The position numbers and the translations under genes were made by a program. A DNA stretch of 64,000 bases from Macrostomum lignano. Taxonomy: Eukaryota. How positions within the stretch are numbered: position 1 is the first letter of the stretch; each line of letters begins with the position of its first letter. This document shows, one piece after another, positions 5,540-64,000 of the stretch. The DNA lies in the NCBI GenBank assembly GCA_002269645.1, contig NIVC01002472.1, positions 107,259-171,258 of the forward strand. Reading direction: 5' to 3'. The notes under the pieces were generated by a model. That model searched no databases. It saw only the letters and a list, made by a program, of their open reading frames with translations, and was not told the DNA's origin.

Positions 5540-6777
5540 CCTATGAACCAATATGAAAATCAGGCTAACAATATGGATGGTCAATAAAAATACAATACAA
5601 ATCCCATTGTATAATACTCGTACAGCCTATAGGTCCAGGTTTACACGCCTAAGTGATTCAACAAGAAAAAGTACCATGGCATGGTATTAGTAAAATAAAC
5701 ATTTAGTCGATTAGAAAAGTTTATGGTGAGCACAACAACAAAAAATAATTCATCTAAAAAAGATTATTAAAGTTGTAAACCGTGTTTTTTGCATTTGCGA
5801 TGTGTTAAAATATCTTGATTATTGACAGTTGGTATCATTTGTGTCAGCCTCGAGTGTCGAGTCAAATGCTCACGGCCTCACGTCAGAGTTCATCGTAAAG
5901 TGTTTCTTACAAATTACATATTTTAAAATTGTCAGTTAAAACAATATTTAAATGCCGGTAAGTTTTGCTACGAAATCTTACAAAATCTACTTGGCTGATT
6001 ACGTTCAGTTATGAGTGCATTTGTCAGTTGAACAATTTTTTTACAGAGGGTTTGTGGCGGTTAGGATAATAACTTTATTCCTAAAAACATTATTGGTTTG
6101 TACTAATAATTCCATAGTAAATTTAGTCATACAAAATATTTGATACTGTACCAAAATGCAAGGGCCGCAGTATATAACTGTTATATACAGCAGTGGTCCT
6201 TGCCAAATTAAAAAGACCACGTACATGTACATGTACATGTATGTACATTGAAGTATACATGTCCTTGCATGTAGTGTTGCATTGTTACTAATTGGTAACG
6301 GTACGTGTACTTTTTGTATGCAAAGCTGCTAGTTCGTGGTAGTTACAGCATGTAATTCATATAAAGGTAACTCTAGCTCTTTGTCATGATATCTAGAATG
6401 ATGAAGAAAACGAAATTTATGGGATAAAAGTTTAAGGATAAACGTAATGGAGGCTATACAGTACATGTAGTTCTCAAGACTGAACAGCGCGCTTTACATT
6501 AGAGTACATAAGCATGCAAGTATAGTTACCACACATCAATTAAGCGAAAAACCATGCAAGAGCTTGTGACTTCACTATTAAGAAAATTTTGTCATTTTTT
6601 GCCACATGTTATTTCTACACAAGTCATAAAGTAAATAAATTTTATTGATTTTATATAATTAAATTTTTCCTTTCAACCCTTGGTGGAGTACGTGCAGCGC
6701 AGTGAAAAAATGAAGACCTTAAGCTGGCCCAATTTATCCAGCTGTATATACTAAATTCAAATGTTGCAAATATCATT

Positions 6778-7390
6778 TTAGCAGAAGTTTCTGAAATAAC
6801 CAATTTTCCTGTCGAACTTCCATTTGCAGCGTCTGAAATTGCGATATACATGTACATGTAGTAGGTGTTAGTTCTGTCACTTCTCAATAACTCATATTAA
6901 ACTGCAGTTTATCAGTGCTTTGAACTTACTCTTCAACATCGCCGCTTTCGTCATCTGCAGAAGTCTCAGACTCGTCGACTGTCGCGGGCTCTTCTAAAGC
7001 ACCTGGAAAGTAATATGCATGAGGCAAAGTGCATGTATACAGAGGTACATAAATATATTGAAGCATCTTTTGAATTTTGCTATTGACTTTGACACCTGTG
7101 CACGGCCCCAATATTTGTCACTTTGTCTTCGTTCTTTCGGTGAGTTCTTAAATTCTGAACAACACCGTCACAAAAGCATGGATGCATTAATTAATACAGT
7201 ACGTAGCAGTACCCTCGGTTGTTTCATCTGAATGCATAATACATGCATATCACAAGAAAAAAGCTGCTTTAAAGCAAAAGAACTTGCCATAATTTCCGTA
7301 GTTAGAATCGCCGTTGAATTCCGCAAGACTTGTGCGAGCTAGCATGACCACCAGAGACACGAATAGAAGGGTCACAGTGAAGCGGGTCAT
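6778..7390 (-). CDS. Secreted peptide precursor A (76 aa): signal peptide + acidic propiece + cationic Cys-x14-Cys peptide
   Basis: Exons 7390-7288, 7002-6930 and 6832-6778 (231 nt). GCCACCATG start; GC-AG intron 1 (G|gcaagt...tttccag); GT-AG intron 2. Protein: MTRFTVTLLFVSLVVMLARTSLA-EFNGDSNYGNYGALEEPATVDESETSADDESGDVEER-CKWKFDRKIGYFRNFC*. AATAAA at 6646-6641. Confidence 0.8.
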
Positions 7391-8074
7391 GGTGGCAGCG
7401 CAGTGGTTTCAGATGATTTAGCCAAAACTGTTGTAGCACTGGAAGCGCGTGACTCATCGGCAAAAATATTGCTAAACCTTCCACCCAAATACGCAGACTG
7501 ACTTAAAAGGCCAGCCTTTTATTGTTGGTAATGCAGTAATTGTGTTAAAGAATTTTCAGCTCGAAACTAGCTCACGTGTCTTGGACTAACAACCGATGCT
7601 CACGTGTGCAGTACTGCTCATCAGACTCATATTCATAAAATAGAAACCTTTGATTGCCCTGGCTACTATGCAGTCATTATGTGCGGCCAAAACCAGAAAA
7701 CGCAATACGCTAACCACTTCTCTAACCATTGCAATAGCTACTGATTGCTTTTGCAATTGCAGTTAACTTCAGTGCTCCAGCTCAATTAATGCAGAGTTCT
7801 CTGGTAGCCAAGGGGTATTAAAGAAAGAGCAATTCGTGAGGAAACTCAAGCACAGAGCTATACATTCTCATTCAGTGATTTCTACCACCTCTAATCCTCT
7901 GTTTTTAACTCAGTGTTCTAACAGTTTTGTGAGTGACTTTCGCAAAAAGTCTAAAGTCTATAAGACTTTTTCAAGTACATCATTTTGTATTTTCTTGGTT
8001 ACTTAATAAATTTAAAGTTCGTCTTTAATCATATGCTGTAATCAGATTTATATGAATTTTGGTCCATCGCATGT

Positions 8075-8480
8075 GGCCCCAAACTCGAGTATCAGTGACT
8101 CAAAACACGTACGAGCGTACGAGTCTCAGTTGCTTAAAACTCGAGTCTTCAGTGACTCAAATCACGTAGGAGTCCTCTCTCAGTTGCCCCAAAAATCGAG
8201 TCTTCAGTGACTCAACACACGTAGGAGTCTCAGTTGCCCCAAAACTCGAGTCTCAGTGACTCAACACACGTAGGAGTCTCAGTTGCGCCAAAACTCGAGT
8301 CTTCAGTGACTCAACACACGTAGGAGTCTCAGTTGCGCCAAAACTCGAGTCTCAGTGACTCAAAACACGTAGGAGTCTCAGTTGCCCCAAAACTCGAGTC
8401 TCTCAGTGACTCAAACACGCGGTACGAGTCTCAGTGCCCCAAAGCTCGAGTATCAGTGGCCCAAAACGAGTCTCATAAAG
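8075..8480. repeat. Minisatellite, ~48-50-bp unit, ~8 copies, each carrying TGACTCA
   Basis: Unit ccccaaaactcgagtct(t)cagtgactcaacacacgtaggagtctcagttg. Seven perfect TGACTCA sites between 8096 and 8413. Confidence 0.95.
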
Positions 8481-8635
8481 TTCGAATAACAGCATTCTGT
8501 AAGTCGTTCGCTTGTCTTATTTCAGCCGAAACTAATTGTGCAAACTCTCTGTGAAGCTTTAAGCAACTTAATTCGTCTCTTACCTGCATACGATGCTCTG
8601 CATTATAATCCGTCTGAAATAATGAACGCACCTTA

Positions 8636-11338
8636 CCCGGGTAGCATTTTGACGTCAATTTGCGGTTGCGTTGACGTCGCAAAAATTACCATCGCAAATC
8701 TATTCACCCCAGCCCGTCTTCTTTGATATTTTAGTTTATTTTTGCATAATTAGATGCCAGAGTCAATATGCATTTATAGTCATCATTTTGCTAGCTCAAT
8801 TATACCTGTAAAATAGCAAAGAAGTAACGTAAAATATTCGTTGAAAGTAGGTTGAAAAATCAACGTAAAAACTTTAGTCATTATGGAACCCAAAATTTGA
8901 CGTTTATATACTGCAGTACTATATAATTACGTAGATTGAATGATTTTTATAACACTGAGAAAAGTAAGGGAAAAAGTAAGGCTCGTTTTTTTACAGTTTT
9001 ATTTTGTTAATACGTGTTATTAAAATCGTATATTTGAATATTTTGCTGCATGATAAATCGCTTTATATCATAAGTGGCGTTGCGTTTTTATTTAGTTAGT
9101 GTTACCAGCTATATGAAACTTCACCTTCACAATGATATCAACGTCATCTTTCTCCTGGTTGAATATTATTCGAAATATTTTCAGCTGCCATAAAACATAC
9201 CAATAGATGTTTTTGGTATAGAATGACTTAAAGCAATACCAAATCATGGCTGATTTAGCTACTACAAACTTTGCTAAATTGGCTGGCTAATAAAATAGTT
9301 GCTCCTTTTAATTCTACTACTTTCTCTCTCCCCATTTTCCTATCAGTACTGCTGTTTGTATTGGAAATATACAATAATAATAGCCTGGCCTACCACAAGT
9401 ATTGCATTGGTTACAACTATTAGAGTTAAACATAATTCCTATCAAAATAATAATTGTCTGGAAATCAAATTCCTACATACATACAGTTTGCAAAGAACTG
9501 CTTGATTTTCAAATCAGTCTTACTCTCAGCCTAATCATATATAATCATTGGACCTTAGATATCATATCCAAGATCCAATTTCAAATTTTTATTTGGAAGG
9601 TGCAGTTGTTCTAGCATTTCTATCATATAAAAAGCTTGGCATACTTGATTTGAAATTAATATTTTTTGTTTCTTAGTTTTACTAATCAGCCATTTAATTA
9701 CATCATATCTATTATACATGCTAAGTTCATGTTAGCATTTAAAATATACTTTAGTTTCCTAGTTATCTCATTAAAATCTTTAGTAGGCCCTAATTTCTCA
9801 TTTTAGCACTCTTAGAGCTACAATTTCCTTAACAAACTTATGCTTAGCTATATTCTATAGTAAAACATACATTTATTAATGTTTTGCCTCATCAAGTAGC
9901 CTATAGCTTGTTAATCATATTTAAACATATTTTAGACATTATTGTAGCATTGCTGGGCACTATTGTTTAATTTGTGGTTGAGCAGATTTTTTAGCTGAAT
10001 AGAAAGTCTGAAAAAAGTAAAAATATTTATAAGATTATGTATAGAAATCCTAAGACTAAGAGTAAGGCTAAAGACTTCTGTATAATATAGTTTTGTATAT
10101 TGTAATTTATGGATATATAAAATATAACTGTACAAATGCATAAGTCAAAATCTTTTTATAACCAAATATACTTTTTTCTGCCTATTTCAGATGGCCACCT
10201 AGGTGAAGAGGACAGGAGAGATTGCTACTATATGCCATCAATGATACTAATTCCAACTCCTAGATGAGGAGGAGAAAATTCATTCCTATGATGACATCAT
10301 CCCTGCTTATTGGAACAGGTTGTCATGAAGGGATGTCAGCTAGTCAATTTGAGGAAGGAGTTGTGGAAGAGGATAACAATTCACCATTTGATTCAGTCTC
10401 CTCCAATTCAGAGACTGGGGACTATCAAGAATTTGATGTAGATCTTCTGAGTGAAAGACTAGGCAAAATGCAGCAATATGCAACTATACTCTCTATTTAT
10501 TTATTCTACAGTTCTGTTGCTTGCTGCTTTCATCCTTATATTTGTTGATCAATGACACTGTTTTCAACATTCTATTTTGTTTTGTCAGTACTGTCGTTTT
10601 TGGCGCTATTGTAAATTTTTCAACTTTTAAAATTTAATTTATTACCATCCTTTTCATAAATTTTCATTTGCAAGCATCAACTTAATTTGTGTTAAAATAA
10701 CAATTTATGAAAAAAAGTAACAACTTCTGAATCCAATGTCTACAATATGTATGTATACAAGAGAAGATGAATATAAGGCTTTGTCCGCATGTATTCTTGT
10801 TTAATATTTTCTGGTAAAAATGTAACTATTAGCCAGGGGCGTAGCCAAGGGGGGTCATTGGGGTCATGAACCCCCCCCCCCAGCTGTCTGATCCAGGCCA
10901 AATACAGGCAGCAGCCCCCCTCCCCTGTCGCAGAGGCCTAGCACCCCGCCCCCGGTTGCCGTGTGACTGTGACCCCCGGAAGGAAATTCCTAGCTACGCC
11001 ACTGCTATTAGCTTCTAGAAATAAGATGGATACATGTACTGCCTACACACATTTAAAGAAAGTTGACTTCAGAATGCAAAGATAACCATCAATTATAAAG
11101 CCAGTAACATTTGTTTTCTTAAAAGACATTATACCAGTCATTTCGTGCATTTAAAAGCCATTAAATCTATTAAATAAAGACGGTAAAATTTCGGTACATT
11201 TTGACGTCAAAACAACGTCATAGATCTAGGTCAAAATTACGTAAAAAACATCGACAGAATTGACGTCCTTTCGACGTTACACTTTGACCTATTTTCAACG
11301 TCATTTTGACGTCGCGCAACGTCACTTTGCTACCCGGG
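8636..11338. mobile_element. 2.7-kb non-autonomous DNA transposon with TIRs and TTA target-site duplication (superfamily uncertain)
   Basis: tta|CCCGGGTAGCATTTTGACGT ... ACGTCACTTTGCTACCCGGG|tta. ACGT-rich subterminal repeats at both ends. AT-rich interior with no transposase ORF. Confidence 0.8.
10834..11004. mobile_element. 171-bp hAT-type MITE nested in the 2.7-kb element
   Basis: TIR CAGGGGCGTAGC / GCTACGCCACTG (11/12 match). Perfect 8-bp TSD CTATTAGC at 10826-10833 and 11005-11012. Confidence 0.9.
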
Positions 11339-11638
11339 TTAGCTGCCCCGGGTTGGACAACAGTGCCAACCCAAAGCACAAAAGTGAGACTGCAGCAGTA
11401 ATTTAGACTGGATGATAAAATGAAAGAAGCTTTCAACAATAGACAGAAAGTAAACCCAATTCCAGGCATAAACAAACGCTGCGGCTTCGATTCTCTGCCG
11501 CAAATTTAAAGCAAAATAAAAAGGGACGCACCACAGTGGCTTGCTACGCTACGATAAGAGCTTTCAATGCTCATAAGCACGCGCTCAAACCTGCAGTAGC
11601 ATCAGGCGGGCAAAAGCTTTTTAAGTATTATCTACGAC

Positions 11639-11687
<49 letters not shown>
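11639..11687. repeat. (GATA)n microsatellite
   Basis: About 12 perfect GATA units. Confidence 0.98.
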
Positions 11688-12027
11688 TGATAACAAACAA
11701 AAGCCTGACACTCCATTTGTATGGAAAGAAATATAAGCTGTGATAGGTAACTTGAAGTAGCTACTTGTATATTTAGATTGTTTCGCGGTAACTTTTTGCC
11801 AAAAAACAAGAGAAGTTATACAGGTATTGTTTTTATTTTGTGGATATACAAGCTATCTGTGTAATGGAAAATTTAGCATCCGATCTTCGGGGGGAAAGAA
11901 CTCTGTTAGAGAGACTTAACAAGATTTTTAAAGACGTTACTGCTTCTGGCTAACACTGAAGAAACTATTTGTTGTTAAACTAAATTTCGAAGTATTTGTC
12001 GCCTCCGTGAGAAGTGGCTTGAGCAGC

Positions 12028-12465
12028 TCAAGGACACGCCAGGGTGTGCCGCTTGTGCTTCCTTCGGTACACCCACCTGCATCGCCTGAAATTATAAGGG
12101 GGGATTTCAGTTGGTGCCAAATTAATTTCTACGTAGTTTTTCTGCGCAGAGTTAAGAGTTGGGTTAACTTGGGGAATATTTGAGATAGAAGACAGTGAAG
12201 CAGCTAGCTAAAAGCCACACTGGACTCACTTCTGAAGGTCCTCATCGTCATCGGCCTCATCAGATTCCAGAGCCGGTTCCTCGGCTGAAATGTTGTACGA
12301 AAAAATGTTGGCTATGCCGATAGCTAAAAACCTAATTTAAAAAACTCGATCTCCACTTATGCGGGTCTCACCGTAGTCATCGGCATAATCGGAATCTTCA
12401 TAGGCCGAGCAGACAAACACAGCAGTCAGAGACAGAAGCAGCAGAGCCGCAGTCAGGCGGTGCAT
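12028..12465 (-). CDS. Secreted peptide precursor B (68 aa): signal peptide + acidic propiece + KR + cationic Cys-x14-Cys peptide
   Basis: Exons 12465-12372, 12284-12230 and 12085-12028 (207 nt). Canonical gtgag donors and tttcag acceptors. Protein: MHRLTAALLLLSLTAVFVCSA-YEDSDYADDYAEEPALESDEADDDEDLQKR-CRWVYRRKHKRHTLACP*. AATAAA at 11837-11832. Confidence 0.88.
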
Positions 12466-12506
12466 GTTGTTGCTTTGGCGTTGTTGGTGACTTGCAAGAT
12501 TCTCAA

Positions 12507-12569
12507 TGACTCAGGTGCGGTTCGGGCTTGACAAGAAAAGAAAGGTCTTTGAAATTCGTTGCTTTTATA
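12507..12569 (-). promoter_or_regulatory. Putative promoter of precursor B: TATA box and AP-1 site
   Basis: TATAAAA (minus) at 12569-12563, ~100 nt upstream of the ATG. TGACTCA at 12507-12513. Confidence 0.55.
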
Positions 12570-13104
12570 GACACACCCTATCACCTGAGAATGCGTGCGT
12601 TTGCGGTGTGGGTTCTGAGCACGTTTTCCAGAGCTCAGCTCGGGGCCAACGAAATTTATTGGACAGTTTCGTAGCACGTGAGGTTTTTGCCAAAACGTGC
12701 CCTACGGCCCTACCGCTAAGTGCTGCCATAAATTCTGTGCTTGAATGCAAAGTTTTGTTGAAGAAGCAAATGCGCAAATGCAGTAGTGCCTGAGATAGAT
12801 GGAATACAAGCTTATCGTGTGTCAGAAAAAAACGTAATGCAAAAAACATAGAGACACACTTTATAGTGAATTTGAGATTTGCATCTGTTTGTCTGCCTGA
12901 ACCCAACAGAGCCAAGTTTGCTGCAGAATCAAAGAGTTGCCGTAGAGCCAATGCGTGGACAATCATAAGGACGCTACACTTACAGATTTTACTGAAGCGA
13001 GATGGAAAGTTGTCAGTTTTTATCACTGACTAATCACTGAAAATGAACGCGCATCTGACCGTCTGAGTTTCCGAATCGAGAACATACCCTGAGTATACGA
13101 ACAA

Positions 13105-15469: not shown

Positions 15470-15995
15470 GGGTGCCTATCAGAAGACAGAGGCGCCCACC
15501 AAGAGACAAAGAGACAGGGGCGCCCACCAAGAGACAAAGAGACAGGGGCGCCCACCAAGAGACAAAGAGACAGGGGCACCCACCAAGAGACAAGTGTGCC
15601 CACCAAGAGACAAGTGTGCCCACCAAGAGACAAGTGTGCCCACCGAGAGACAAGTGTGCCCACCAAGAGACAGGGTCGCTCACCAAGAGACAGGGTCGCT
15701 CACCAAGAGACAGGGGCAACCACCAAAAGAGACAGGGTCGCTCACCAAGAGACAGGGTCGCTCACCAAGAGACAGGGGCAACCACCAAAAGAGACAGGGT
15801 CGCTCACCAAGAGACAGGGGCAACCACCAAAAGAGACAGGGTCGCTCACCAAGAGACAGGGGCAACCACCAAAAGAGACAGGGTCGCTCACCAAGAGACA
15901 GGGGCGCCCACCAAAAGAGACAGGGTCGCTCACCAAGAGACAGGGGCGCCCACCAAAAGAGACAGGGTCGCTCACCAAGAGACAGGTTCGTCCAC
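15470..15995. repeat. Minisatellite of 17-22-bp units built on caccaagagaca
   Basis: Alternating caccaagagacaggggcgcc, caccaagagacaagtgtgcc and caccaaaagagacagggtcgct units. Explains the repetitive ORFs in the track. Confidence 0.95.
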
Positions 15996-17109
15996 CAAGG
16001 CACCAAACCTTGGCGTCCGGTTGCGGCCTCCAATAAAAGTTCTTGCCGCTCCTGCAGTTCAAGTTATAAGCAAACACACGGACTAGGCGGTGTCCGAAAG
16101 AATTATGTGTTTCAACAGGTCGGTACACGTACATGTACCAGGCTTCGATTTGAAAATATCAAATATTTTAAGAGCAAAAATTTTTCGTTCGCAAAATTCG
16201 AACCTATACCTTCAGATAGAGTTAAATTAATTCGTTTTTTTCTGTTAAATAGGCTGATATTTTTTTCTGGGTTCCAATGTTTTTTCGAGCGCAGTGCAAC
16301 AAAAGTTTTTTTTGCTACTCCAAGTAGCACAACAAACTGGTTGAATTTTATTTCGCATTAAACCGAACATTAACCCTGGCTTTATTACGAGCTATCTTTC
16401 GTAATTTTTTTTGTTTTGCTGGGATCTAATAATTTGGGAAATTTTTTAATACAGAATACAGACTTCATCTCTTAAGCTGCTTCTGGATATCGCCAATAAT
16501 CTTTTCTGCAATTAAAGAGTCGTAAAACCAGCAGAATTACAACTCTGTTTAAAACTGACTGCATTGGTTATCTTGTAGCCGTACTTGCAGACACTGTCTA
16601 GTCTTTTCCTATCATTCAGATATCCCCAAACAGCAGGTTTGCAATGAAATTTTTCTCGGCAGTGTAAATATTTGCGCATTGGGATATTTTACGAGCCGAG
16701 CAAAATCAAATGTTTCTATAGCTAACCCAGCTCAGGCTGATCTGATGGTGTTTAAACTAATCACGTTAATGCGCAGACGCTGATCCTGAAGCTGGTGCGC
16801 AGAAAATAATGATAAAAGTGCGTTAAACCGAAGAATACTGAAATGCGTAAAGTTATTTTAACCTTGGCCTTCTAATCTCTGAATCTCGTCAATCCCCTGA
16901 GGAGATTTCACGACTTCAATCGGCATGACGAGTCGAAAATGGAACCGGAAGAGCTTCAAATTGGCGGTGAGTTGCCGCAATCTGGTTGACGGCAGTCAAA
17001 ATGATTAAAAAATGACTTTCCACCTGGAAACGAACCGCTAATAATTAGACTCTCCCTCCAGCCTCTAACCAGGAGCTTCCTCTCCTCTCGCCTCTCTCGC
17101 TCTTTCTTC

Positions 17110-17252: not shown

Positions 17253-19427
17253 ATGTCATCTTCTGCTGTCACCTGCCACGAGGTGAACTCCACCGAGTAT
17301 TGGGACCTCCTGCAGCTGCCCGCTGTCCGCGCCGGGCTCGCAGCTGTCTGGATCAGCGTCGGGCTGCTGATGTTCTTCGGCAACTTGCTGGTTGTCTGCA
17401 CCATCTGTCTGCACAGAGCAATGCGAACCGTCACCAACTGCTACGTGTTGAACCTGGCAGCGGCTGACCTCATGGCCGCCGCCTTGGTGGTGCCGCTGAA
17501 GGGCCTTCAGCTACTGGGACCCTGTTGGCTTGCGGCCAAGCTTTTCAATCGGCTGGGCTGCGCGTTCGTCACCTTCTGCATGATGGTGCTGGTTTTTGCC
17601 AGCCTGTTCACGCTGGTTGTCATCTGCATTGAGAGGTGAGTTGTTAGACAACTGAGAGCGGGTTCTATACTGATTGCATTGCCTACTATCTTGGACTTGC
17701 TTCCTTAGCTTAGAATGCTGGTTAACTGAAGGGGGCTTGGGGGCATGCATATCCGACTCTTGGACGATTTGACCTACATGTACTAGCTAGATGCAAAAAT
17801 TAAGACAAATGTTAGAGCGTACGCATTGAAGGCTGCGTACGGCTGTTCAGTCCAAGGCTGGGGGTCGCCACACACACCAGCAATTACCCCAGCTAATGCT
17901 GGCACCCATTTTACAGCTGGTGAACTGAAGCAATGCAGAGTTAAGTGTCTTGCTCAAGGACACAATTTATTCCGAATGGGTCGAGAAAATTGTTCCGACG
18001 CTCTAACCAGTGGCTACAACACCGTGAGAGCATTTGGCGAAAGGCATATTAACCCGAAATCTGTTTTGCTAACTTGAAGTTTTGTCGTCAGACCGTTAAG
18101 ATTCGTTTAATGGTTTGGAGCTCATTTGCTCAAAAGCAACTCTCTTACTCCTAAACCAGGTTCCTAGCCATCGTGCACCCGCTGCGCAGTCTGCTATTCC
18201 AATCAAGCCGTCGCACCTGCCTATTCATTCTGCTCACCTGGTGCGTCCCAGCCGCCTTCTGCCTGGTGCAGGCGATGCACCCGGCCGCCCAGGCCTTCCA
18301 CAGCGTTAGCGGCTACGGCGACATGCGCAGCCAGCACTGCATGGACAGCTTCAGCCGAGCGGCCGGTACGCTTACGTCATGTCCGCCTTCTGCCTGCTGT
18401 TCCTGCTGCCACTCTGCGTGGTGGTGTTCACCTCGGCCTCCATTGTGCGGGTTTTGCAGCGGCCGGTGCCGGGGCAGAATGAGAGCAGCGTGCGGGCTGT
18501 CAGCTCCAGGAGGCATGGCCGCGGCAGGGGCAGCTCGGTCAGGGAGAAGACCTCCAGGGAGGAGAGCAAGAGGAAGGTGAATGAAAAGGGAGGTCCTGAT
18601 CCCTTGGCCAAAAAAGTTGGGGTTCACTGTAACAAGAAATTCTTGTGGTTTTCATAAAGTTTAAATTTTGTTCGCCTGGATACTCGTACATACCAGCAGG
18701 TGAGTATTTTCGTTCTCAGGGATCGGAGGAACCAACCAGTCTTCTACAAACTAAGCCACATAATGTCATGTTAGTTAGCTGGCAAAAGGCATAAGCATAC
18801 AAAAAGAATTTTGACTGAGACCGATCAAGCCAATGATTATTCTCACCCAATCAGGTCGCCAAAATGATGATCGTGGTCGCGGCTCTGTTCCTCGTTTCGT
18901 GGACGCCATGGTTTGCCGTGAACGTTGCCGGACTATTTTACAGAGACATCTACGCCAAAAACTACGGGTTCACCATGGTGATGCTGCACTTGGTTGGCTT
19001 TGCCAACTCCACAGCCAACCCGGTGGTTTACTACTTCATGTCGCAGCGCTTCCGTCTCGGCTACCGTCGCGTTCTCGCTAAAATATTCTGCTGCTTCGAC
19101 TGGCACGTTGGGGCCGATAGCTTCGACTCGCGACGCCAGAGCAGCGCCAATCTGCACCGACGCCAGGGAGGCACCGAGATTCGGCGCGCGGACAGCTCCG
19201 GAGGAGCCGGTCGCCTGAATGCTGCCGCCAGAGATCGAGCGTTTGGCTGCAACAGCAGCATCGTTGACGCGGACTGCCTAACACACTGCGAGAGCGCCCT
19301 GCCGCCCCCGCGGCTGTCCAGCAACTCGGACCAGGAAGACAATCAGGACGGCGGCTTGCAGCAGCTGGTGGAGCTGCAAGAATTCGGCCTCCGCGGCAGG
19401 TCAGGCGAAAGCTGCCGAAACTACTAA
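17253..19427 (+). CDS. Rhodopsin-class (class A) neuropeptide GPCR, orexin/allatotropin/QRFP-like neighbourhood; one frameshift in exon 2
   Basis: Exons 17253-17635, 18160-18576 and 18855-19427. Motifs: GNLLV (TM1), MRTVTNCYVLNLAAADL (TM2), IER|FLAIVHPL (DRY region), ECL2 Cys, KRK|VAKMMIVVAALFLVSWTPW (TM6), ANSTANPVVYYFMSQRFR (TM7). Frame changes near 18355. Confidence 0.88.
17826..18040 (-). mobile_element. CORE-SINE copy in GPCR intron 1
   Basis: gaaggctgcgtacggctgttcagtccaagg...cacccattttacagctgg...ttaagtgtcttgctcaaggacacaa is the reverse complement of the family core. Confidence 0.85.
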
Positions 19428-24337: not shown

Positions 24338-26936
24338 TCAATCCAGCAGTTCGTCATTGAGCTGATCAACGAGCTCCGCGGGAGACGAATCGATAGGCAG
24401 GTTGCAAAAGCTCTCGACCAAGGAGGTTGGGATGCCCATCACTTGGAGAAAATGCTGCACGAACTCGATTCCGGCCTGCTTCACGTACGCCTCATCAGTG
24501 CCCTGCAGTTTTTGGTGTTGTGGCAAATTGTTGCTTTTCAGGAGACTTTGTCTCATAAAAACTACTGAAAACTTGTGAAAGGAATATTATTGCGGGAGTA
24601 TTATTGCAATTGTTTGACAAAGATTTAGAAGTGCAGTGGCTGATTAAAATTGGCTGAATTAGGGTCAATATTTGAAGCTAGTATTCGAAAATGTGAAACG
24701 TTATTCATTACTCTCATATCATAGAAAATTTTCAAGTTGCAGAACTCACCCACGGCTGAAGCATGCGAACAAAAATTTCCGGAATCTGCGCGAATGCCTT
24801 CAGCAGGTTCGTCAGGTTCGGCCGATCTGTGTGCGGCCTCAGCAGGAGAATCAGTCCGGAGAGTGAGTCTTCCAGTGAGCAACTGACAATGAAATCGTTA
24901 GCCAGAGTCAGCTGAGTGAAATCCGCATCCTGAAATAGCTTCCAAGCCAGAGCTCTGGCTTCCCCCAGGGAGATAGTCTGGCTGCCTTCTGCCGGGCAGG
25001 CGATTCCGCGGCTAATGGAGTACTGCAGCTGCTCGGGAATGTCGTCGAGCGGCACCCCAGCCTGTAGGTAGGCCATGACCTTGAGGCACTCCCTGCTGAC
25101 TCTGGCACAGTCGGGCACTTTACTAATCAGATCAAGAAAAATGTCCAACTCGCCTCCGAGAGCTACGTGAACGTGCGCATCACAAAAAGCGTTGTAGGCT
25201 CCCATCTGCTGCTCCTTTGCCCCGGCCGCTTTAGTGACCACCTCCGCGGCGAACATGACTGGAAGCAGTGGGTAGATGAGCACTGCCGTCACCTTCGACT
25301 TTGGCAGAGATCGCTTGAATGCCTTCAGTTCGTTCTCTAATCTACTCGCTACGGTGAGAACTGAATTGACAATCACTGACTTCGAATTGTGATCCTTCTT
25401 AAAGTACACGTTGGCATCGCGCAGGAAGAAGTGCTTCATGCACACGTACTCGGAGTCTGAGCTGAGCATCATCTCAACCAGCAGCTGTAGCGAGTGTCGC
25501 ACGAGTTCCAGCAAGTTCTTCGGCTCCCAGTCCGCCGCTGGTGTCTCGTCAAGCATATAGAACAGCAGGTTCTTGGCCATGTACGTCTTCAGACCGCTCA
25601 CCTTCATCTCGATGCTGATCACCTTTTTGATGAGAAACTTGATAAGGATAAAGAACTGTCCTTGCTCTGTCGTGAGGCTCTGCATGACGGCTCTCTCCAG
25701 CAGGGTTGTGCTCACCCGCATGCAGCTTCCCGGCTTTTGACCAGGAGGTGATGCGGCGACGGCGTGGCATCTTGGTGAATCGCCCAGAACCTCCTCTGCG
25801 AGCTGCTGCATGATGTATGGTGGCATTTGGGATGGCTGACCTCTTCTGCTTCTGTAGCCGCGCTGCAGCAGATCGATGCGAGGGTAGCTGCAGCAGGGCA
25901 GCGCTACGATGATGTCGTAGTCTGGCAGCATTTTCGAATTTTTATTGCTGTAGTTCGGCGCATTGACTGAAATAGGAAATGCAATTCGTGAGACACTGTT
26001 ACATTAGAAGAAGTATTGCTAGAGTAGAGTTTCAAGAATTCTCCATTCAACTGCTGAGTCTACTGGATAAACTTTTCCATGACTGCATCTTCTACAATCT
26101 AGAAAAACGTTACTATGAAGCGGGATGGTAGCCTAGTGGTTAGAGCGTCGGACTCACGACTGAAAGGTCGGGGATTCGATTCCCGATTCCACTGGAACAA
26201 TTTGTGTCCTTGAGCAAGACACTTAACTCTGCATTGCTCCAGTTCACCCAGCTGTAAAATGGGTGCCAGCATTAGCTGGGGTAATTGAGGGTGTGTGACG
26301 ACCCCACAGCCCTTGGACTGAACAGCCGTACGCAGCCTTCAAATGCGCCGCGCAATAGCTGCGGCTGAGCTGTCGGTTGCACATCTGCCCATTGAGGCTG
26401 GTGTAATCAACTATTAATATTATTATTATTTGATGAAGCAAAAAGCAAACACAACTTCAACTTCGAATGCTTTCACTGTATGAAAACTTTCCTCAAAATT
26501 TAGAGCACGCAGGCGGATCTTAATATCGAAAGAAATCAGTTCAGTCAGCCGATCACTCACCGCCGCTGGAAAATTGGACGTGACCGTCATCGTAAAGCGC
26601 TCGTCTCTCCTGATTGAACCGGCAGTCGGCTCTCCCGCACAGGTGGAGCGCGTTCCGCTTGGAAATCAGAGTCAGGTCCACGTCGCTCTCAACGTCAACC
26701 CGGCCATCCAATTTTTTTAAACTGCTCCCCCAGCCGTCGGAGAAGCTGCCGAACACGTACACGCTGAAAGATTCTCTGAGTAGGAAGGTTCCCAGTTCTT
26801 GGAACACGGTGGCAAATGCTGACTGAATGTGAGCATTGTAGGACTTGAATCCTGCGAGCTCCATTCTCCGAGAGAGTTTCAGGCTTTCATTGCTGTATTC
26901 TGCTGATGAACGTTCTGTGTTTGGTTGTTGGGCCAT
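24338..26936 (-). CDS. Mab-21/cGAS-like receptor (cGLR) nucleotidyltransferase, ~608 aa in a 3-exon model
   Basis: Exons 26936-26561, 25966-24750 and (less certain) 24571-24338. NTase motif VFGSFSDGW...DVESDVDLTL, third acidic residue in YDIIVALPC, and Mab-21 C-lobe MRVSTTLLERAVM...LIKFLIKK...LKTYMAKNLLFYMLDETPAADW...MKHFFLRDANVY. Confidence 0.85.
26120..26430 (+). mobile_element. Full-length tRNA-derived CORE-SINE in cGLR intron 1
   Basis: A box TAGCCTAGTGG; B box GATTCGATTCC; core GTGTCCTTGAGCAAGACACTTAACTC...CAGCTGTAAAATGGG resembling the MIR CORE as recalled; (TTA)n tail. Confidence 0.9.
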
Positions 26937-30016: not shown

Positions 30017-33000
30017 CTGAAGGAGCGAGTTTTCGAATTCGTTTCTTGCTGAGAATACTTTGTCACGTGCTTCAGGCGTGGTCTTGGATACAAATCAACA
30101 GAACTCAATAGCGATTGCGTGGTAGGTGAAATTGTGCACATGCAAAATAAAGCTGGTTCAGATGGTGTACAGAAGGAAAGATTCATTGGCTGCAATGGTG
30201 GGAGACACCGAGCTTCTATTCGAGATACGCATGTGCCCTGCTTCTTTCTTTTTCATATTTATCGTCTTGAGTGCATTTCTTGATAGCTAAATTTACAACT
30301 TTTGATTTTCTATTTGTGTTTTCTATTGTGAAATAGTTCTATTTTCTATTTCTACTCGTTTAAAAAGCAACACGACATCCATCTCTCCAGGTAAAAATAG
30401 GCTTATCAGACAAAAAATAGAAAATTATATACGTATAGCTGAAGTATCGAAAATAAACAGATTAGGGAATGTCGCAGAAAAATAACACAGAGTAAATTTG
30501 CGATAAACAGGACGACATCGAGGTGTAAACGTGGGATAATAGTATGGGGTGGACAAAGACTCACAAAGAGGATAATAGTATGGGGTGGACAAAGACTCAC
30601 ACAAAGAGGATAATTAGTACGGGGTGGACAAAGACTCACACAAAGAGGATAATTAGTACGGGGTGGACAAAGACTCACACAAAGAGGATAATTAGTACGG
30701 GGTGGACAAAGACTCACACAAAGAGGATAATAGTATGGGGTGGACAAAGACTCACAAGGAGGATAATAGTATGGGGTGGACAAAGACTCACAAAGAGGAT
30801 AATTAGTACGGGGTGGACAAAGACTCACAAAGAAGATAATTAGTATGGGGTGGACAAAGACTCACAAAGAGGATAGTTAGTATGGGGTGGACAAAGACTC
30901 ACAAAGAGGATAATAGTATGGGGTGGACAAAGACTCACACAAAGAGGATAATTAGTACGGGGTGGACAAAGACTCACACAAAGAGGATAATTAGTACGGG
31001 GTGGACAAAGACTCACACAAAGAGGATAATAGTATGGTGTGGACAAAGACTCACAAGGAGGATAATAGTATGGGGTGGACAAAGACTCACAAAGAGGATA
31101 ATTAGTACGGGGTGGACAAAGACTCACAAAGAAGATAATTAGTATGGGGTGGACAAAGACTCACAAAGAGGATAGTTAGTATGGGGTGGACAAAGACTCA
31201 CAAGGAGGATAATAGTATGGGGTGGACAAAGACTCACACAAAGAGGAAAGTGAATAAAAGGTGCTGCTGCACAGCCCTCACCATCGCAGTCATCCATAAC
31301 CACGAAGACGAATTCAAAATCTGAATTTGCGCAGCAATGTTTTCATTATTGGTGGTGCATAATTTTTTATTGTGTTGCTTACATCTTTGAAAGAAATTTG
31401 TGCTGCAAGCTTTACACTTTTTGCTTGCAGTTTTGTGCATTAATTTAGAATTTATTCATAAAGCCAAGTCCCTGCCTGCCTGCAGATCTGTAAAGATAGA
31501 ATTTGTCTTTAAATATCGATACCCCTACGAGTTTTCATTATTCAAAAGTTTAGTAAATTTGCAACTTAAGCTCAGCTTAAAATGTTGATGAGTTACTTAA
31601 AGCAAGCTCAAAAGCTTTCGGAGAGGCATATGCTGCAGTGAATGCTTAGTCTTGCATGCCGGTTGATGATAATATCTAACCTGCCATTCTCCATGCTCCT
31701 GACACACCCCTGACAACTGAAATGAAGCAGTTTACTGGCAGCTTTCACCATCAAATACAAATCTGACACCAATATACAAATGCAATTATGAGAGACCACC
31801 AGTTGATGAAGATTATGCGATTCAGCTGCCACCGAAAAAGCCATGACAAGAGGAAAGCGCCGCGCCATCAACATTTCAACCTATTCAACTTACGGTCTTC
31901 ATCCAGCAGAGAGCTAAATGACGATTCAAGACTCTCTGGTGGCAGAATTCCCTGCTGCTTGCAGTACAACTCTACCTCGTAAATATTTTCTGTCGCAAAG
32001 TCTCCTTGGAAAATGTTAGTGCAGTTTTTCGGAATTGAAAATTTCAGTTTTTGTTGCCTAAACTACATGTGGATGTACAGTACATCCGAAATATGCTCCG
32101 TATTTAGCTATTCAGAGGCTGAAAAGTGTTTACCAATTTCTGGAATACTTTCTGAGCATGCTTAGGACATGACGGAATGCGGCTTGATGGACTAAATATG
32201 TTGATTTATTCAATACCAAGCGGTACATATTGACCATATCAATAATCTCCACGATCCACACACTGCCAAAAGTAGAACACAGCAGCGACTCACCTCTGCA
32301 CGGGTCGTTCTTCACCAGGAACTCGTCGAGTGCCTGCCAGCCGCCGCCAACCCGAACCATAACGGTGCTGCGCAGGATTCGGACTAGTCTCAGCTTCTGG
32401 TTCTCGCCGAACACGTACTTGCCCTCGCCGACCTTCTTGATCTGGAATGGCCGGCAGCAGGTGCAGTTGCCAGCCAGCTTGCGCACCTGCTCGTGGATTC
32501 GCTCGCTGTCCGTAGCCGGCTGCCGCTGCCGCCAGTCGGGGCGCAGCGCGGACTCGAACTCTTTGTAGTCGATGAAGCCGTCACCGTTCAGATCGAACTG
32601 ATCGGCGACTTTCTCCATCTCCAGGCGGGACGTTGGAAAGTCTGCGAATAAAAATGTTTTTTTCGTACGGTCACTTTTCGAACTCTAATTATAGCATGAC
32701 AATGAAACTAGAGGTGCAGCGGTGAGAATTCTTGTTTCGCTATCTTTCTAGACATACATGACGGCAGATTCATGCAATAAAAATTCTATGAGTAGTAATG
32801 AACTACTAGAAGGATAATGCAAGAATGGAAGGAAATGCCCAGTAAGGAAACAGAATAAATATTTATTCGTACTCGTAGAATACTGAGTTGAGCACCAACA
32901 TTCTGATCAACTACCATGCATCAAAAGCGTGTATTGGTGGTGCGAGAGCGGGGGGAGGCTGGGATTCGGCTAGCAAACACCAGTGTAAAAAAGGTTAATA

Positions 33001-36000
33001 CGAGCGTAGGTCAAACATTTTCCTTTTAAATGCATATTACGTATTATGCAACCGAGTACAATTTTTTTATTAGAGGCAGGGGGTTGTGTGCACCCAGGCG
33101 CACTTTAATTAATATAGGCACACAACCGGCGAGAGGCATTACTGCCCATTCCGCCGACTCCCCTGAGCAGGCATACAAGCGCGCGGATACGTACGCAGGC
33201 ACACACTCACACAGGAGTGTACAGCGGCCCTAACTTTATATTATCGTTAGGCATGTACACTTCACTGCGCCATGGGGGATTGGCTCTCAAGGCCGTTAAT
33301 TGCACGAGCAGAGCCAAGCCGAGATTCCAATTCAGCCCCAAATTAATGTGACTGCACTTGGAATCGAGCCTGGGTCGCTGGCACACCAGAGCCTGCGCTA
33401 CCGCTGGGCTACGGCCCCTCAACCGAGTACATAGTTATGCTTTATGGTAATAACTTGACGCGTTCCAGAGCTTAGTAGGGAGACAAGTGATGACCTTCAA
33501 AACTCTAAAAAATCTAACCATGCATCCCACTTCCCTGTTTCTGCTTAGTGCCAAAGCTATCGTGCAAGCTATCAATAGGTAAGGACAAACACGTAGGAAG
33601 GTAGGCAAAAGGCAAACCAAGGTTGAGACAACAGAAAGAAAGGAAATTATCCAAACTGCATGAAGCAGGCGCTCACAGTATCTCGGCGGGTATCTAGAAA
33701 TCGGAGCTGTAAAAAAAGTAAAATGAAATCGAATGCAACTGACTGAACTGCGAGTACTAGTAAATAAGTGGCACTTGATTGTGTTATAAAACAAAAATTG
33801 AGTCTTTTTTAAAACCAGCCAGTGGAAGAAGACTTGACTTACTCGACTCGAGCACTCCATCGATAAACTCCTGCCGACTGACTTTGCCGTCGTGGTCGGT
33901 GTCCTTCTTTTTGAAGAAGTCCATGACTCGGAACTTGTTGACGTCCATCCACTCTTTGTAGCGCTGGCGCCACTCATCAAAGTCGAACGCTTCCAGGCGC
34001 TTCATCTGCGAAATGATATCAGGAAGGCGGGGCTTTGATGTCTTAAGCACAGAAGTTCAATTGGAAAAATCGACGATGTTTAAAAATTCATGACTTATGA
34101 ATGCGCCAGGAGTAATAATCAGAAATGTCTCTACGTGTACTTTAAATTATTAACAAAGGCTACGAAATGCAGCTGCAAAGCTTGCTAGAAAAGAAGCATT
34201 TCAGCAAATCAGTGTACAAAGTTCCCAAATTGAGCAACGCTAATCTGCAGCTACAAAATTTGAATCAGCAGCACAATCGAAAGGGGTACTCGTATCGCAT
34301 GATTTTGTAGATGAACTTGTTCAGCTCAAAGTTTGAACTCCAGCGCGACTAGAAAATACAAACAAATCCTTTTATAGAGAAACAACTCGAGCAGTTTACG
34401 AACTTGAGCTTCTCGAGCTCGTCGCTCCGCATCCTGAGCAGCTATCTGGGATAGATGAAGTGCCATTTTGTCTAGTGAGTCCAAGTGCTTGCACCTATTG
34501 CTTTTGAGACTCCAAACATAACTGGATGCTTCAAAACAGCAATTGAACTCAGAAATTACCTCTCTGGCCTGCAACAATGCGGCTTCCAGTCTCTGGCGTC
34601 GTTGAATGACATCCAACCAGAGCTGCTTCCAGCCGGCCTGCAGCTTATTCACTGCCGGATCTTTGAAGCCTGGAGAGGCCGGCTGCTGCTGCTGTTTCTG
34701 CTGCTCCTGCAGCTGGTGATGCAGGTTGTGGTGGTGGTGATAGTCGCTGCTGCTGCTGCCGCCGGAGCGCCGCGGCCGCTTGGAGGCCGGTGCGGACTCT
34801 GGCGCCGCTCGCTTTGCATGCGCGGTGACGCTGTCCAAGTCCGGCTGCCGAGCCTCGATCTCGGACTCAAATACCCTCTGCTGATCAAGCAGGAGCTCCA
34901 CCTCCTGTATGTTGTCGGGCATCGGCTTTGCTTCATTGGCTCGCAACGAGGCGTCTGCGCCAGCTAGCCAGTCCAGGAGCTCGCGAAGGAGATGCCGTCT
35001 GTGTTGTGGATACAAAGTGCCGCGTTAGGAAATTTTATGAAACTATATAAAAAGCAGAGAAAGCGTCATTTGAAAATCATATAAATGTTTTTACCTGTTC
35101 GCTGCCGCCTGCTTTGCCTCTTGCAATTTCTCTCCTCGCTGAATTGACCACTCGAACACCTGGTCCCAGCGACTCTGCAACACCAGAAGCCATTGGCGAA
35201 CTCTCGGCCGTCCGTCTGGATGCGACGAGTCGTGAATGGCTGATCCAAGAGCCAGTGCCTCATCCAGCTGGGGTCGTTTACCGCTGAAGCCTTCGTGGAA
35301 CTTAGCGTGCTCATTGATGCGCTCTTGATAGGCAGCTTCCGTCTCGGGATCTGGTGGCGTTCCCAACGCCTCGATTCGCTGCTCCGCCTGGGTGAACAGA
35401 GCCAGCAAGCCTCGAGCCTTTGACGCGAAAGCCTCTGCGTTGGCTGCCGCTTCATCAAGCTGCTGGCGCCTGCCAGCGGAAAGTCGGGTGACGCGGTCCC
35501 ACTGCGTCTCGAGGTCAACCAGCTGCTCCTGCACTCGACTAGCGTTGGCATCTGCGACACTGTTGCTTAGCAACTGAGCTGCTGACCGCTGGATCAGATC
35601 GAGGGTGTCACGCTTACGATCGAGCTCCTGCTCAAATTGCCTGTGCGACTCTGATAGGACCAGCACAGTTTCCTGGTCGCCGCCAACCAAAACTTCAGGA
35701 GAGAGGGCCGGTTCAGCCCGATTCAGCCAATCAATCAGCGTCTGCATCGCCTCCAGGTACCGACCTGGATAGTTTTTTGTAAATTCATTTAAAGTTTATA
35801 ACTTGAACTATCACAAATATATATCTTCATCACTTTCACAGAAATATGAAAACAAATTGACTTACCAGAGCAAGTAAGTGCGTCGCTTAGTTTACGTTCT
35901 CGTTTCAGAGCCCTCTCGCAGAGTTCCTTCCACTGCTGCTTGAGATCGTTGATCATGGTAGTGAGCTCTGCCTGATCAAAGTCTGGCGCCCGGTTCTTCA

Positions 36001-63000: not shown

Positions 63001-64000
63001 CTGATCCAGCTAGGCCTGTAGTTGGCTGCTGCTGTTGTTGTGATCCAGCGAGGCCTGTATTGGCTGCTGTTCTGATCCAGCAAGGCCTGTACTTGGCTGC
63101 TGTTCTGATCCAGCAAGGCCTGTAATTGGCTGCCTGCTGTTGTTCTGATCCAACGAGGCCTGTAGTTGGCTGCTGCTGTTGTTCTGATCCAGCAAGGCCT
63201 GTAGTTTGCTGCTGCTGCTGTTTCTGATCCAGCAAGACCTGTAATTGGCTGCTGTTCTGATCCAGCAAGGCCTGTAGTTGGCTGCCTGTTCTGATTCCAG
63301 CGACGCCTGTAGTTGGCTGTTGCTGTTTCTGATCCAGCGAGGACTGTAGTTGCTGCTTTTGATCCAGCGACGCCCTGTAGTTGGCTGTTGCTGTTTTTCT
63401 GATCCAGCAAGACCTGTAATTGGCTGTGTTCTAATCCAGCAAGGCCTGTAGTTGGCTGCTGCTGTTTCCTCTGATCCAGCGAGGCCTGTAGATGGCTGTG
63501 TTGTTCTGATCCAGCAAGACCTGTAGTGGCTGCTGTTCTGATCCAGCGACGCCTGTAGCTGGCTGTTCCTCTGATCCAGCTAGGCCTGTAGATGGCTGTT
63601 GTTCTGAGCCAGCAAGGCCTGTAGTTTGCTGTTGTCTGATTCAGCGAGACCTGTAGTTGGCTGCTGCCTGTTGTTCTGATCCAGCGAGGCTTGTAGTTGG
63701 CTGCTGCTGTTGTTTCTGATCCAGCAAGGCCTGTAGTTTGCTGCTCTGCTGTTCTGACCAGTAAGACTGTAATTGGCTGCTGTTCTGATCCAGCCAAGGC
63801 TGTAGTTGGCTGTTTTTTCAGCGACAACTGGTCTTTAGTTGGCTTTTGCTCTGATCCAGCAAGCCTGTTAGTTTGCTGCTTCTGCTGTTTCTGATCCAGC
63901 AAGACCTGTAATTGGCTGCTTTTTCTAATCCAGCACGCCTGTAGCTGGCTGTTCTCTGATCTGCGAGGCCTGTAGATGGCTGTTCCTCTGATTCAGCAAG
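29625..64000 (-). CDS. macf1: Spectraplakin (MACF1/dystonin/short stop family), 5' incomplete; actin-binding and plakin domains would lie beyond 64000
   Basis: Hand-spliced exons: ...-58548, 58018-51151, 50186-50040, 49952-49707, 49616-48339, 48247-47878, 47589-47491, 47180-46789, 46447-45668, 45542-45225, 45141-43753, 43426-43100, 42611-41598, 40134-~39857 (disrupted), 38505-37628, 37051-35866, 35764-35095, 34998-34560, 34005-33843, 32641-32294, 30016-29625. Spectrin repeats, two EF-hands and GAS2 occur in the canonical order. The junction from 51151 to 50186 is not resolved. Confidence 0.93.
30528..31245. repeat. Intronic minisatellite, ~32-35-bp unit
   Basis: ggataat(t)agta(t/c)ggggtggacaaagactcac(ac)aaaga, ~21 copies. 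Confidence 0.97.
32294..34005 (-). CDS. macf1: Spectraplakin EF-hand and GAS2/GAR exons
   Basis: [14 protein letters not shown]...[13 protein letters not shown]; [14 protein letters not shown]; [20 protein letters not shown]...[33 protein letters not shown]. Confidence 0.97.
33062..33420 (-). mobile_element. Second tRNA-derived SINE-like family, in a spectraplakin intron
   Basis: Minus-strand head gaggggccgTAGCCCAGCGGtagcgc...GCTCGATTCC (A/B-box-like) and an A-rich 3' end near 33062-33070. No CORE sequence. Single copy in this window. Confidence 0.45.
51151..58018 (-). CDS. macf1: Spectraplakin giant exon (~6.9 kb, ~2290 aa; acidic and disordered; plectin-repeat remnant near its 3' end)
   Basis: ORFs 52505-58024 and 51123-52637 join across one frameshift near 52695. 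Acceptor atgcag|ACC at 58018; donor TG|gtatgc at 51151. [16 protein letters not shown]...[17 protein letters not shown] is plectin-repeat-like. Confidence 0.75.
59130..64000 (-). repeat. >4.9-kb minisatellite, 33-39-bp unit, probably coding ([11 protein letters not shown])n within a spectraplakin exon
   Basis: Unit GGATCAGAACAGCAGCCAACTACAGGCCTTGCT, varying mainly by CAG codons. Runs without a splice site into unique coding-like sequence that ends at donor CAA|gtgagc (58548). Confidence 0.9.

Follow-up and report, generated by a model that had tools for sequence, protein, structure and literature searches.

A 64,000-nucleotide (nt) stretch of the genome of the flatworm Macrostomum lignano (contig NIVC01002472.1, positions 107,259 to 171,258; hereafter the window, in whose numbering all positions are given) carries two small genes on its minus strand, gene 1 (7390-6778) and gene 2 (12465-12028), whose products share an N-terminal signal sequence, a strongly acidic spacer and a cationic C-terminal peptide with a Cys-x14-Cys arrangement. 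Gene 2, deposited as Mlig016089, is in all likelihood a real secreted-prepropeptide gene; for its paralogue, gene 1, the arguments for and against function are evenly balanced. What is new here is a functionally undescribed family, and what was already known is one member deposited as a hypothetical protein. As to function, our leading but tentative guess, based on charge layout and composition, is that the peptides may be antimicrobial or host-defence cationic effectors, either antimicrobial proper or binding anionic surfaces.

Gene 2 and its transcript support

Gene 2 comprises three coding exons which, spliced by script, join in frame to encode a 68 residue product, MHRLTAALLLLSLTAVFVCSAYEDSDYADDYAEEPALESDEADDDEDLQKRCRWVYRRKHKRHTLACP. 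Beginning from the ATG, exon 1 (coding part 12372..12465) encodes a 21 residue putative signal peptide (…VCSA|YE) and runs on into the acidic propiece, ending in phase 1 at the donor ACG|GTGAGA; exon 2 (12230..12284) continues the propiece as (A)EEPALESDEADDDEDLQ(K) and ends in phase 2 at the donor GAA|GTGAGT; and exon 3 (12028..12085) completes the Lys, adds an Arg to form a KR site, and encodes the 17 residue peptide CRWVYRRKHKRHTLACP (12081-12031) ahead of a TGA stop (12030-12028). The two introns are 87 and 144 nt long. Also on the minus strand, a TATA-type box (TATAAAAG, 12562..12569) precedes the ATG by 97-104 nt, and an AATAAA polyadenylation signal (11832..11837) follows 191 nt past the stop codon. 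Half of the propiece is acidic (15 Asp/Glu among 30 residues; net charge -13), and the C-terminal peptide has a net charge of +6. A (TAGA)13 microsatellite occupies 11639-11692 in the 3' flank.

An exact-sequence look-up showed the product to be identical to GenBank PAA57557.1 / UniProt A0A267E9J9 ('hypothetical protein BOX15_Mlig016089g2'), with a second deposited copy, PAA59732.1 (g1), differing from it by A6V, and the annotated Mlig016089 span of 438 nt is exactly the ATG-to-stop interval of our model. Window positions 22465-2028 correspond at 100% identity to L001, from assembly Mlig_3_7. This assembly was made with Canu from PacBio reads and polished with Pilon, and its GenBank annotation was built from a genome-guided RNA-seq transcriptome (StringTie, TACO and TBONE, with open reading frames (ORFs) called by TransDecoder; PMC5730564). 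Because an annotation derived from RNA-seq is identical to the gene 2 model, the spliced gene 2 mRNA has independent transcript support, by way of the exact product in a transcriptome-derived annotation.

Gene 1 and the paralogy of the pair

Gene 1 likewise has three coding exons that join in frame, here into a 76 residue product, MTRFTVTLLFVSLVVMLARTSLAEFNGDSNYGNYGALEEPATVDESETSADDESGDVEERCKWKFDRKIGYFRNFC. Exon 1 (coding part 7288..7390) opens with GCCACC-ATG, an optimal Kozak context (GCCACCATG), and encodes a 23 residue putative signal peptide (…TSLA|EF) and the propiece start before ending in phase 1 at a GC donor, ATG|GCAAGT. Exon 2 (6930..7002) encodes the acidic propiece (G)ALEEPATVDESETSADDESGDVE(E) up to a phase 2 donor, AGA|GTAAGT; exon 3 (6778..6832) completes the Glu and then encodes Arg, the 16 residue peptide CKWKFDRKIGYFRNFC (6828-6781) and a TAA stop (6780-6778). 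Introns measure 285 nt and 97 nt, a TATA-like box (AATAAAAG, 7516..7523, minus strand) lies 126-133 nt upstream of the ATG, and an AATAAA signal (6641..6646, minus strand) lies 132 nt past the stop codon. The propiece contains 13 Asp/Glu in 37 residues (net charge -12) and the peptide carries +4. Intron 1 is of the GC-AG type and matches the usual consensus for that class; the nearest GT alternative (CAA|GTTCTT) shifts the frame and meets a stop after 12 further codons. The sequence before the peptide, D-V-E-E-R|C, does not form a canonical convertase site, and a dibasic site is lacking. The product is absent from a 15-billion-protein collection, in which no protein has even exon 1 in common with it, and no gene is called at this position in NIVC01002472.1 or at the corresponding position in a duplicate contig, NIVC01002236.1.

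These models, with their coordinates and in-frame splicing, come from a reading of both strands over 6500-12700 and reproduce exactly those of the original prediction, which had been made from the letters of the window and a list of its ORFs, and for gene 2 they coincide with the independent GenBank coding sequence (CDS) as well. The acidic proportions and net charges that it gave were confirmed by count. Its description of both genes as cleanly spliced and as carrying a basic cleavage site (ER or KR) stands for gene 2; gene 1 is weaker, as its first intron needs a GC donor and its EER falls short of a convertase site. Its suggestion that automated annotation could miss such short exons was mistaken for gene 2 (PAA57557.1, PAA59732.1, A0A267E9J9).

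The resemblance between the two precursors is spread along their whole length. Both signal sequences have one Arg in the n-region, an unbroken hydrophobic core and small residues at -3 and -1 (S-L-A|E; C-S-A|Y), and both proteins contain the predicted D-S-x-Y, EEPA, C-[KR]-W-x-[FY]-x-R-K and Cys-x14-Cys elements. Intron 1 is in phase 1, right after a Tyr codon, in both genes, and intron 2 is in phase 2 within the codon preceding Arg-Cys, so that the intron phases noticed at the outset are indeed matched; intron 2 ends in the same 8 nt (aatttcag) in both. When the whole proteins were shuffled within segments, retaining composition and layout, none of 5000 shuffles reached the real alignment score (z = 6.4), and for signal, propiece and peptide taken singly the observed score was attained by 0.6-1.1% of shuffles in each segment. 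From the shuffle test, the shared intron phases, the common orientation, the adjacency and the identical end of intron 2 we conclude that the pair predicted to be paralogous are true tandem paralogues, as judged from sequence and gene structure. Their duplication appears to be old, because protein identity is about 40% and nothing can be aligned in introns, untranslated regions or promoters; alignment of these regions and of the flanks found no match beyond exons 1 and 3, and the upstream regions are ~41% identical, the random level. The peptide motif occurs nowhere else in the six frames of the window, and no further family member was found in the window or the duplicate contig by tBLASTn and six-frame regular-expression searches.

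It could be argued that neither is a gene and that the open frames and splice sites arose by chance, given that the exons are short (55-103 nt) and that BLAST similarity between genes 1 and 2 is weak and individually non-significant for each exon (E about 0.5-2). Against this stand the identity of an independent, transcript-based GenBank CDS with the gene 2 model, the shuffle test, the agreement in intron phase and the fact that gene 2 is conserved in both of its genomic copies (see below). We regard a chance origin as extremely improbable, and for gene 2 it is effectively refuted.

On the minus strand, both genes have a TGAGTCA heptamer (AP-1/TRE consensus) in the stretch from the TATA-like box to the ATG, at 7450-7456 (-66..-60 from the ATG) in gene 1 and at 12507-12513 (-48..-42) in gene 2. 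As a candidate shared element it was set aside as a probable chance match; its spacing to the TATA box differs between the genes.

Duplicate locus and differential decay

M. lignano DV1 is a neopolyploid with much duplicated sequence (PMC5730564, PMC10733133), and contig NIVC01002236.1 (L002) repeats the entire region with 95-99% identity. Gene 2 is intact there, with three CDS differences: the conservative A6V in the signal peptide and synonymous changes at D47 and T64, the latter within the mature peptide. No indels occur in its exons, while 19 substitutions and 2 indels fall in the non-coding DNA around it. This pattern is consistent with purifying selection on gene 2, for which the counts are too few to test.

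The gene 1 counterpart, at ~9830-10450 of L002 (window 7390-6778), is disrupted. A 2-nt insertion in the signal-peptide exon changes the reading to MSRFTVTLLFVSLWWSC with a stop at codon 18, the GC donor is lost to a 5-nt insertion, and exon 2 has an in-frame 3-nt deletion; exon 3 is identical to the window copy. Since these are not homopolymer-length differences, they are probably real lesions and not assembly errors. By this comparison gene 1 is seemingly being lost from one homeolog while the window copy stays intact, that is, the paralogues are decaying differentially after genome duplication.

Whether the window copy of gene 1 is active is uncertain because of its GC donor, its EER in place of KR, its absence from the annotation, and the frameshift and destroyed donor in its duplicate; it may be weakly expressed, differently processed or on the road to a pseudogene. 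It is a serious possibility, falling a little short of even, that gene 1 by itself is a non-functional or decaying paralogue, either a young pseudogene or an untranscribed relic, which would leave the family with one working gene in two homeologous copies. The annotation gaps noted above, the three lesions in L002, and the weaker signals of gene 1 (GC donor, EER for KR, AATAAAAG for TATAAAAG) all point that way. On the other side, the window copy is still open over 76 codons and retains an optimal Kozak context, a textbook GC-donor consensus (G|GCAAGT) and good acceptors. Its Cys spacing and predicted hairpin are kept despite ~60% divergence from gene 2, which together with the open frame argues for long-term constraint on gene 1. 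The Mlig_3_7 annotation is moreover sparse, a neighbouring G protein-coupled receptor (GPCR) gene being uncalled too, and absence from it is therefore weak evidence against expression. Loss of one homeolog is in any case expected in a neopolyploid (PMC10733133).

Between genes 1 and 2 the window contains a ~2.7 kb AT-rich insertion (8628-11346) with 28-nt terminal inverted repeats (GCACCTTACCCGGGTAGCATTTTGACGT / ACGTCACTTTGCTACCCGGGTTAGCTGC) and TGACGTCA-rich subterminal repeats. It is not part of either gene, and it is absent from L002, where genes 1 and 2 are ~2.7 kb closer together; for this reason it is probably a DNA-transposon insertion. Just downstream of it, at 8116-8467, a 49-nt unit is repeated in tandem in ~7 copies (88% matches), in an array whose length differs between the two contigs.

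Search for relatives and comparison with known systems

A word-indexed search of 5.8 billion proteins with both precursors returned no match for the gene 1 product and only its own homeolog for that of gene 2, and an exhaustive HMMER search of 1.84 billion representative proteins with a two-paralogue profile hidden Markov model returned only the query's own cluster, without orthologues in the other flatworm proteomes among those representatives. In Pfam at E <= 10 neither precursor matched BRICHOS, somatostatin, Urotensin_II, Pro-MCH, ANP or any antimicrobial family, and PDB sequence searches with both gave noise only; the matches that did appear in Pfam and PDB at E <= 10 (PBP1_TM, VPDSG-CTERM, mannitol repressor, a designed knot protein) were dismissed as noise. 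Neither the gene ID Mlig016089 nor either peptide string is mentioned in the main text of the searchable literature, which also contains no report of antimicrobial peptides (AMPs) from Macrostomum. We therefore take the pair to be a putative orphan family, lineage-restricted as far as the searchable collections go, in which Macrostomum is represented by the annotated M. lignano genome. The claim that the family is undescribed holds in that Pfam, PDB and the profile search of 1.84 billion proteins contain no described family that matches it, and needs amending in that gene 2 was already deposited as a hypothetical protein.

By layout, the precursors come closest to those of amphibian skin peptides (preprodermaseptin, brevinin and ranalexin type, Rana-box peptides included), which have a signal of ~22 residues, an Asp/Glu-rich propiece ending in Lys-Arg and one C-terminal cationic peptide; Rana-box peptides have one disulfide loop, C-terminal and of 7 residues. 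The flatworm precursors differ in showing no sequence similarity to them, in a gene structure of three coding exons, and in a C-x14-C disulfide that would span the whole peptide, and the preprodermaseptin-type signal/propiece superfamily signature was found neither by the profile search (1.84 billion) nor by the word-indexed search (5.8 billion). Because the amphibian superfamily yields hormone-like peptides as well as AMPs, this layout does not fix function.

In product, the closest systems are the hairpin AMPs with one or two disulfides (arenicin, thanatin, tachyplesin, protegrin and the lactoferricin loop), which have 16-25 residues, charges of +4 to +8 and a composition rich in Arg and aromatic residues. 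The likeness lies in a disulfide-closed hairpin, here a predicted one, and in a similar charge density by heuristic comparison, and CRWVYRRK of the gene 2 peptide resembles CRRWQWRMKK of lactoferricin B in its Arg/Trp-rich composition. The cationic, two-stranded, disulfide-closed structure that defines hairpin AMPs is thus present here by prediction. There is, however, no sequence homology; ring sizes differ (C-x16-C in arenicin, C-x6-C in thanatin, C-x14-C here); the gene 2 peptide is more hydrophilic and less amphipathic; and the BRICHOS domain carried by arenicin-type precursors is lacking in both precursors (Pfam E <= 10), which at 68-76 residues are too short to hold it. Hydra arminin offers an orphan-gene parallel among invertebrates: the gene is taxonomically restricted, and its product begins with a signal peptide, continues with an anionic stretch and ends in a highly cationic peptide, which cleavage sets free and which is antibacterial. 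The arminin peptide is nonetheless linear and without cysteines, shows no sequence similarity to ours and comes from another phylum.

Somatostatin, allatostatin-C, urotensin II and MCH likewise derive from small precursors with a dibasic site and a single disulfide-cyclised, non-amidated C-terminal peptide. Their core motifs (FWKT, FWKY, CYFNPISC, RVYRPC) are absent or loosely echoed here, and the charge of the flatworm peptides is much higher. A dibasic site directly before the C-terminal cyclic peptide is present in gene 2 (QKR|C) and absent in gene 1 (EER|C), and is a trait also of AMP precursors. Two more specific echoes were rejected. The natriuretic peptides (CFGxxxDRIxxxSGLGC) have a 17-residue ring where the ring here has 16; FDRKIG echoes them in the gene 1 peptide only, and there is no Pfam ANP match. 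RWVYR of the gene 2 peptide recalls MCH, in one paralogue only and with a misfitting ring size. The likeness to known systems is thus at the level of architecture only, and none is a relative, because every sequence-based test of membership was negative and the arenicin-type BRICHOS domain is absent.

Predicted fold and peptide properties

AlphaFold2 models of both proteins, computed from a shallow alignment of only 3 sequences, consist of a signal helix, a disordered acidic piece (predicted local distance difference test score, pLDDT, < 50-55) and, at the C-terminus, a hairpin of two strands joined by a four-residue turn. The strands are placed at residues 53-57 and 62-66 in the gene 2 product (pLDDT about 83) and at 62-66 and 71-75 in that of gene 1 (pLDDT about 72). 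In these models the two Cys lie opposite one another where the hairpin opens, and the invariant Arg-Lys begins the turn. The models support, as a prediction, a disulfide-closed beta-hairpin in both peptides, in agreement with the hairpin AMPs invoked by the original prediction.

The loops between the cysteines, KWKFDRKIGYFRNF and RWVYRRKHKRHTLA, have 14 internal residues and are rich in Arg, Lys and Trp, and neither peptide has a C-terminal Gly for amidation. Charge per residue is 0.25 for the gene 1 peptide and 0.35 for the gene 2 peptide. In a heuristic comparison, reference beta-hairpin AMPs (arenicin, thanatin, tachyplesin, protegrin, lactoferricin) range between 0.29 and 0.35, and cyclic neuropeptides (somatostatin, urotensin II, MCH, CNP, allatostatin-C, vasopressin, CCAP) between -0.09 and 0.14.

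For gene 2 we propose that signal peptidase would cut after Ala21 and that the acidic propiece would mask the +6 peptide during transport, until a furin- or PC-type convertase cuts after Lys50-Arg51 and frees CRWVYRRKHKRHTLACP. No further C-terminal trimming would be expected, and there is no amidation signal. Oxidation of Cys52 and Cys67 would then close the two-stranded beta-hairpin, whose turn begins with the conserved Arg-Lys.

Possible functions

A host-defence role is favoured because of the AMP-like charge density, the loops rich in Arg, Lys and Trp, the fast divergence of the paralogues and the taxonomic restriction; fast divergence, with no homologues outside the species among 1.84 billion representative proteins, is a pattern typical of immune or effector peptides. 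Beyond this, we put forward as a doubtful but specific proposal that Mlig016089, possibly with gene 1, founds a flatworm-specific family of single-disulfide beta-hairpin host-defence peptides with a minimal precursor, free of BRICHOS or any other carrier domain. These suggestions must be tempered by several observations. The layout of signal, acidic spacer, KR and C-terminal cyclic peptide is equally typical of peptide hormones and does not discriminate. The gene 2 peptide is very hydrophilic (grand average of hydropathy -1.3, Boman index 3.95) and weakly amphipathic, and on that account suits binding better than membrane lysis. Gene 1 lacks the KR, requires a GC donor, is unannotated and has a disrupted duplicate; the structural models rest on the shallow alignment mentioned above; and Mlig016089 is not found in the supplements of M. 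lignano expression papers, the text of which is possibly incomplete. Finally, a failed homologue search with a 68 residue low-complexity precursor is weak evidence for true absence, as precursors so short and compositionally biased make relatives hard to detect across species.

The products might alternatively be cyclic signalling peptides (neuropeptides, hormones or pheromones), made through the regulated secretory pathway, released by a prohormone convertase at the KR and acting on a receptor, in the manner of somatostatin, urotensin II, MCH and allatostatin-C. They have the layout for it, down to the acidic spacer and the single non-amidated Cys-Cys peptide at the C-terminus, and a peptide-type rhodopsin GPCR is encoded 5 kb upstream of gene 2, an adjacency that is a curiosity and not evidence of pairing; that the peptide is the ligand of this orphan receptor we think very improbable indeed. 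The ring is nevertheless larger than in those families (14 internal residues against 6-10), their core motifs are missing and Pfam gives no match to Somatostatin, Urotensin_II, Pro-MCH or ANP, and by the same heuristic comparison known cyclic neuropeptides have a far lower charge density. The very convertases that release the peptide would also put its internal RRK and KR sites at risk, the paralogues agree at 7 of 16 loop positions where neuropeptides are usually conserved, and the other flatworm proteomes searched yielded no orthologues. Taken together, this makes a signalling role rather unlikely.

Some other fast-evolving secreted effector would also fit a lineage-restricted, small, secreted and rapidly diverging family, for example a seminal-fluid or prostate peptide, a toxin used in predation or defence, or a gland secretion, and M. 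lignano does have many orphan secreted reproductive proteins (PMC5977470, PMC7336406). Mlig016089 is, on the other hand, missing from the supplementary lists that accompany the seminal-fluid screen and the study of reproduction genes, and no sequence feature is specific to any of these roles; we hold this to be unlikely. A variant, and a long shot, takes the anionic 28 residue propiece as the functional product; in its favour, the release factor of the adhesive organs has been postulated to be an unidentified 'small negatively charged molecule' (PMC6410801), although the releasing-gland vesicles are reported to be protein-poor and PAS (periodic acid-Schiff)-positive (PMC6410801), which argues against a peptide release factor.

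Other features of the window

The GPCR gene mentioned above (17253-19427, plus strand) is an unannotated three-exon gene of the rhodopsin type (7tm_1). With ERF in place of DRY and Met at 3.32 the receptor is not aminergic; among PDB relatives the beta2-adrenergic, CCK, TRH, QRFP, somatostatin and galanin receptors are about equally close, so that they point to no ligand class. In the window copy a run of C at 18355-18356 is 1 nt shorter than in L002, shifting the frame between transmembrane helices 4 and 5, which reflects either an assembly error or a pseudogenised homeolog. Between gene 2 and this receptor lies a GC-rich 20/42-nt tandem repeat of ~22 copies (15484-15999), with long spurious ORFs on both strands.

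Farther along, a minus-strand gene at 24732-26936 has a Mab-21 C-terminal domain (PF20266, E = 2.6e-6); a nucleotidyltransferase-like GS…D-x-D motif is encoded by an exon upstream of it, and by these features the gene product may be a cGAS/Mab21-like (cGLR-type) protein. It is followed on the same strand by a large multi-exon gene of the spectraplakin type (MACF1/dystonin/Shot-like; ~32100-50000), with many spectrin repeats, an EF-hand and a GAS2 domain at its 3' end. Open frames of 504 and 1839 residues at 51123-58024 (minus strand) are acidic and rich in Ser, Glu and Asp; the 504 residue ORF, the one that was scanned, has no Pfam match, and the segment may belong to the spectraplakin gene as its 5' part, or form an orphan gene of its own. 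Last, ~5 kb of degenerate repeats (59057-63902, minus strand) contain Gln/Ser/Leu-rich ORFs and show a strong AT skew (-0.35).

Implications

Animal genomes commonly encode small, secreted, cationic orphan peptides, and this pair is one of many such cases that are uncharacterised. The locus is a clean case of an orphan tandem pair in a neopolyploid, in which one paralogue is kept in both homeologs and the other is vanishing from one. Should the products prove to be signalling peptides, they would make up an unusual, highly basic family of cyclic ligands. If they are antimicrobial, this would be, to our knowledge, the first such AMP family described from free-living Platyhelminthes. The AMP repertoire would gain a hairpin scaffold that is very small and easy to synthesise, and a flatworm that is genetically tractable by transgenesis and RNA interference would have its first defined effector of innate immunity.

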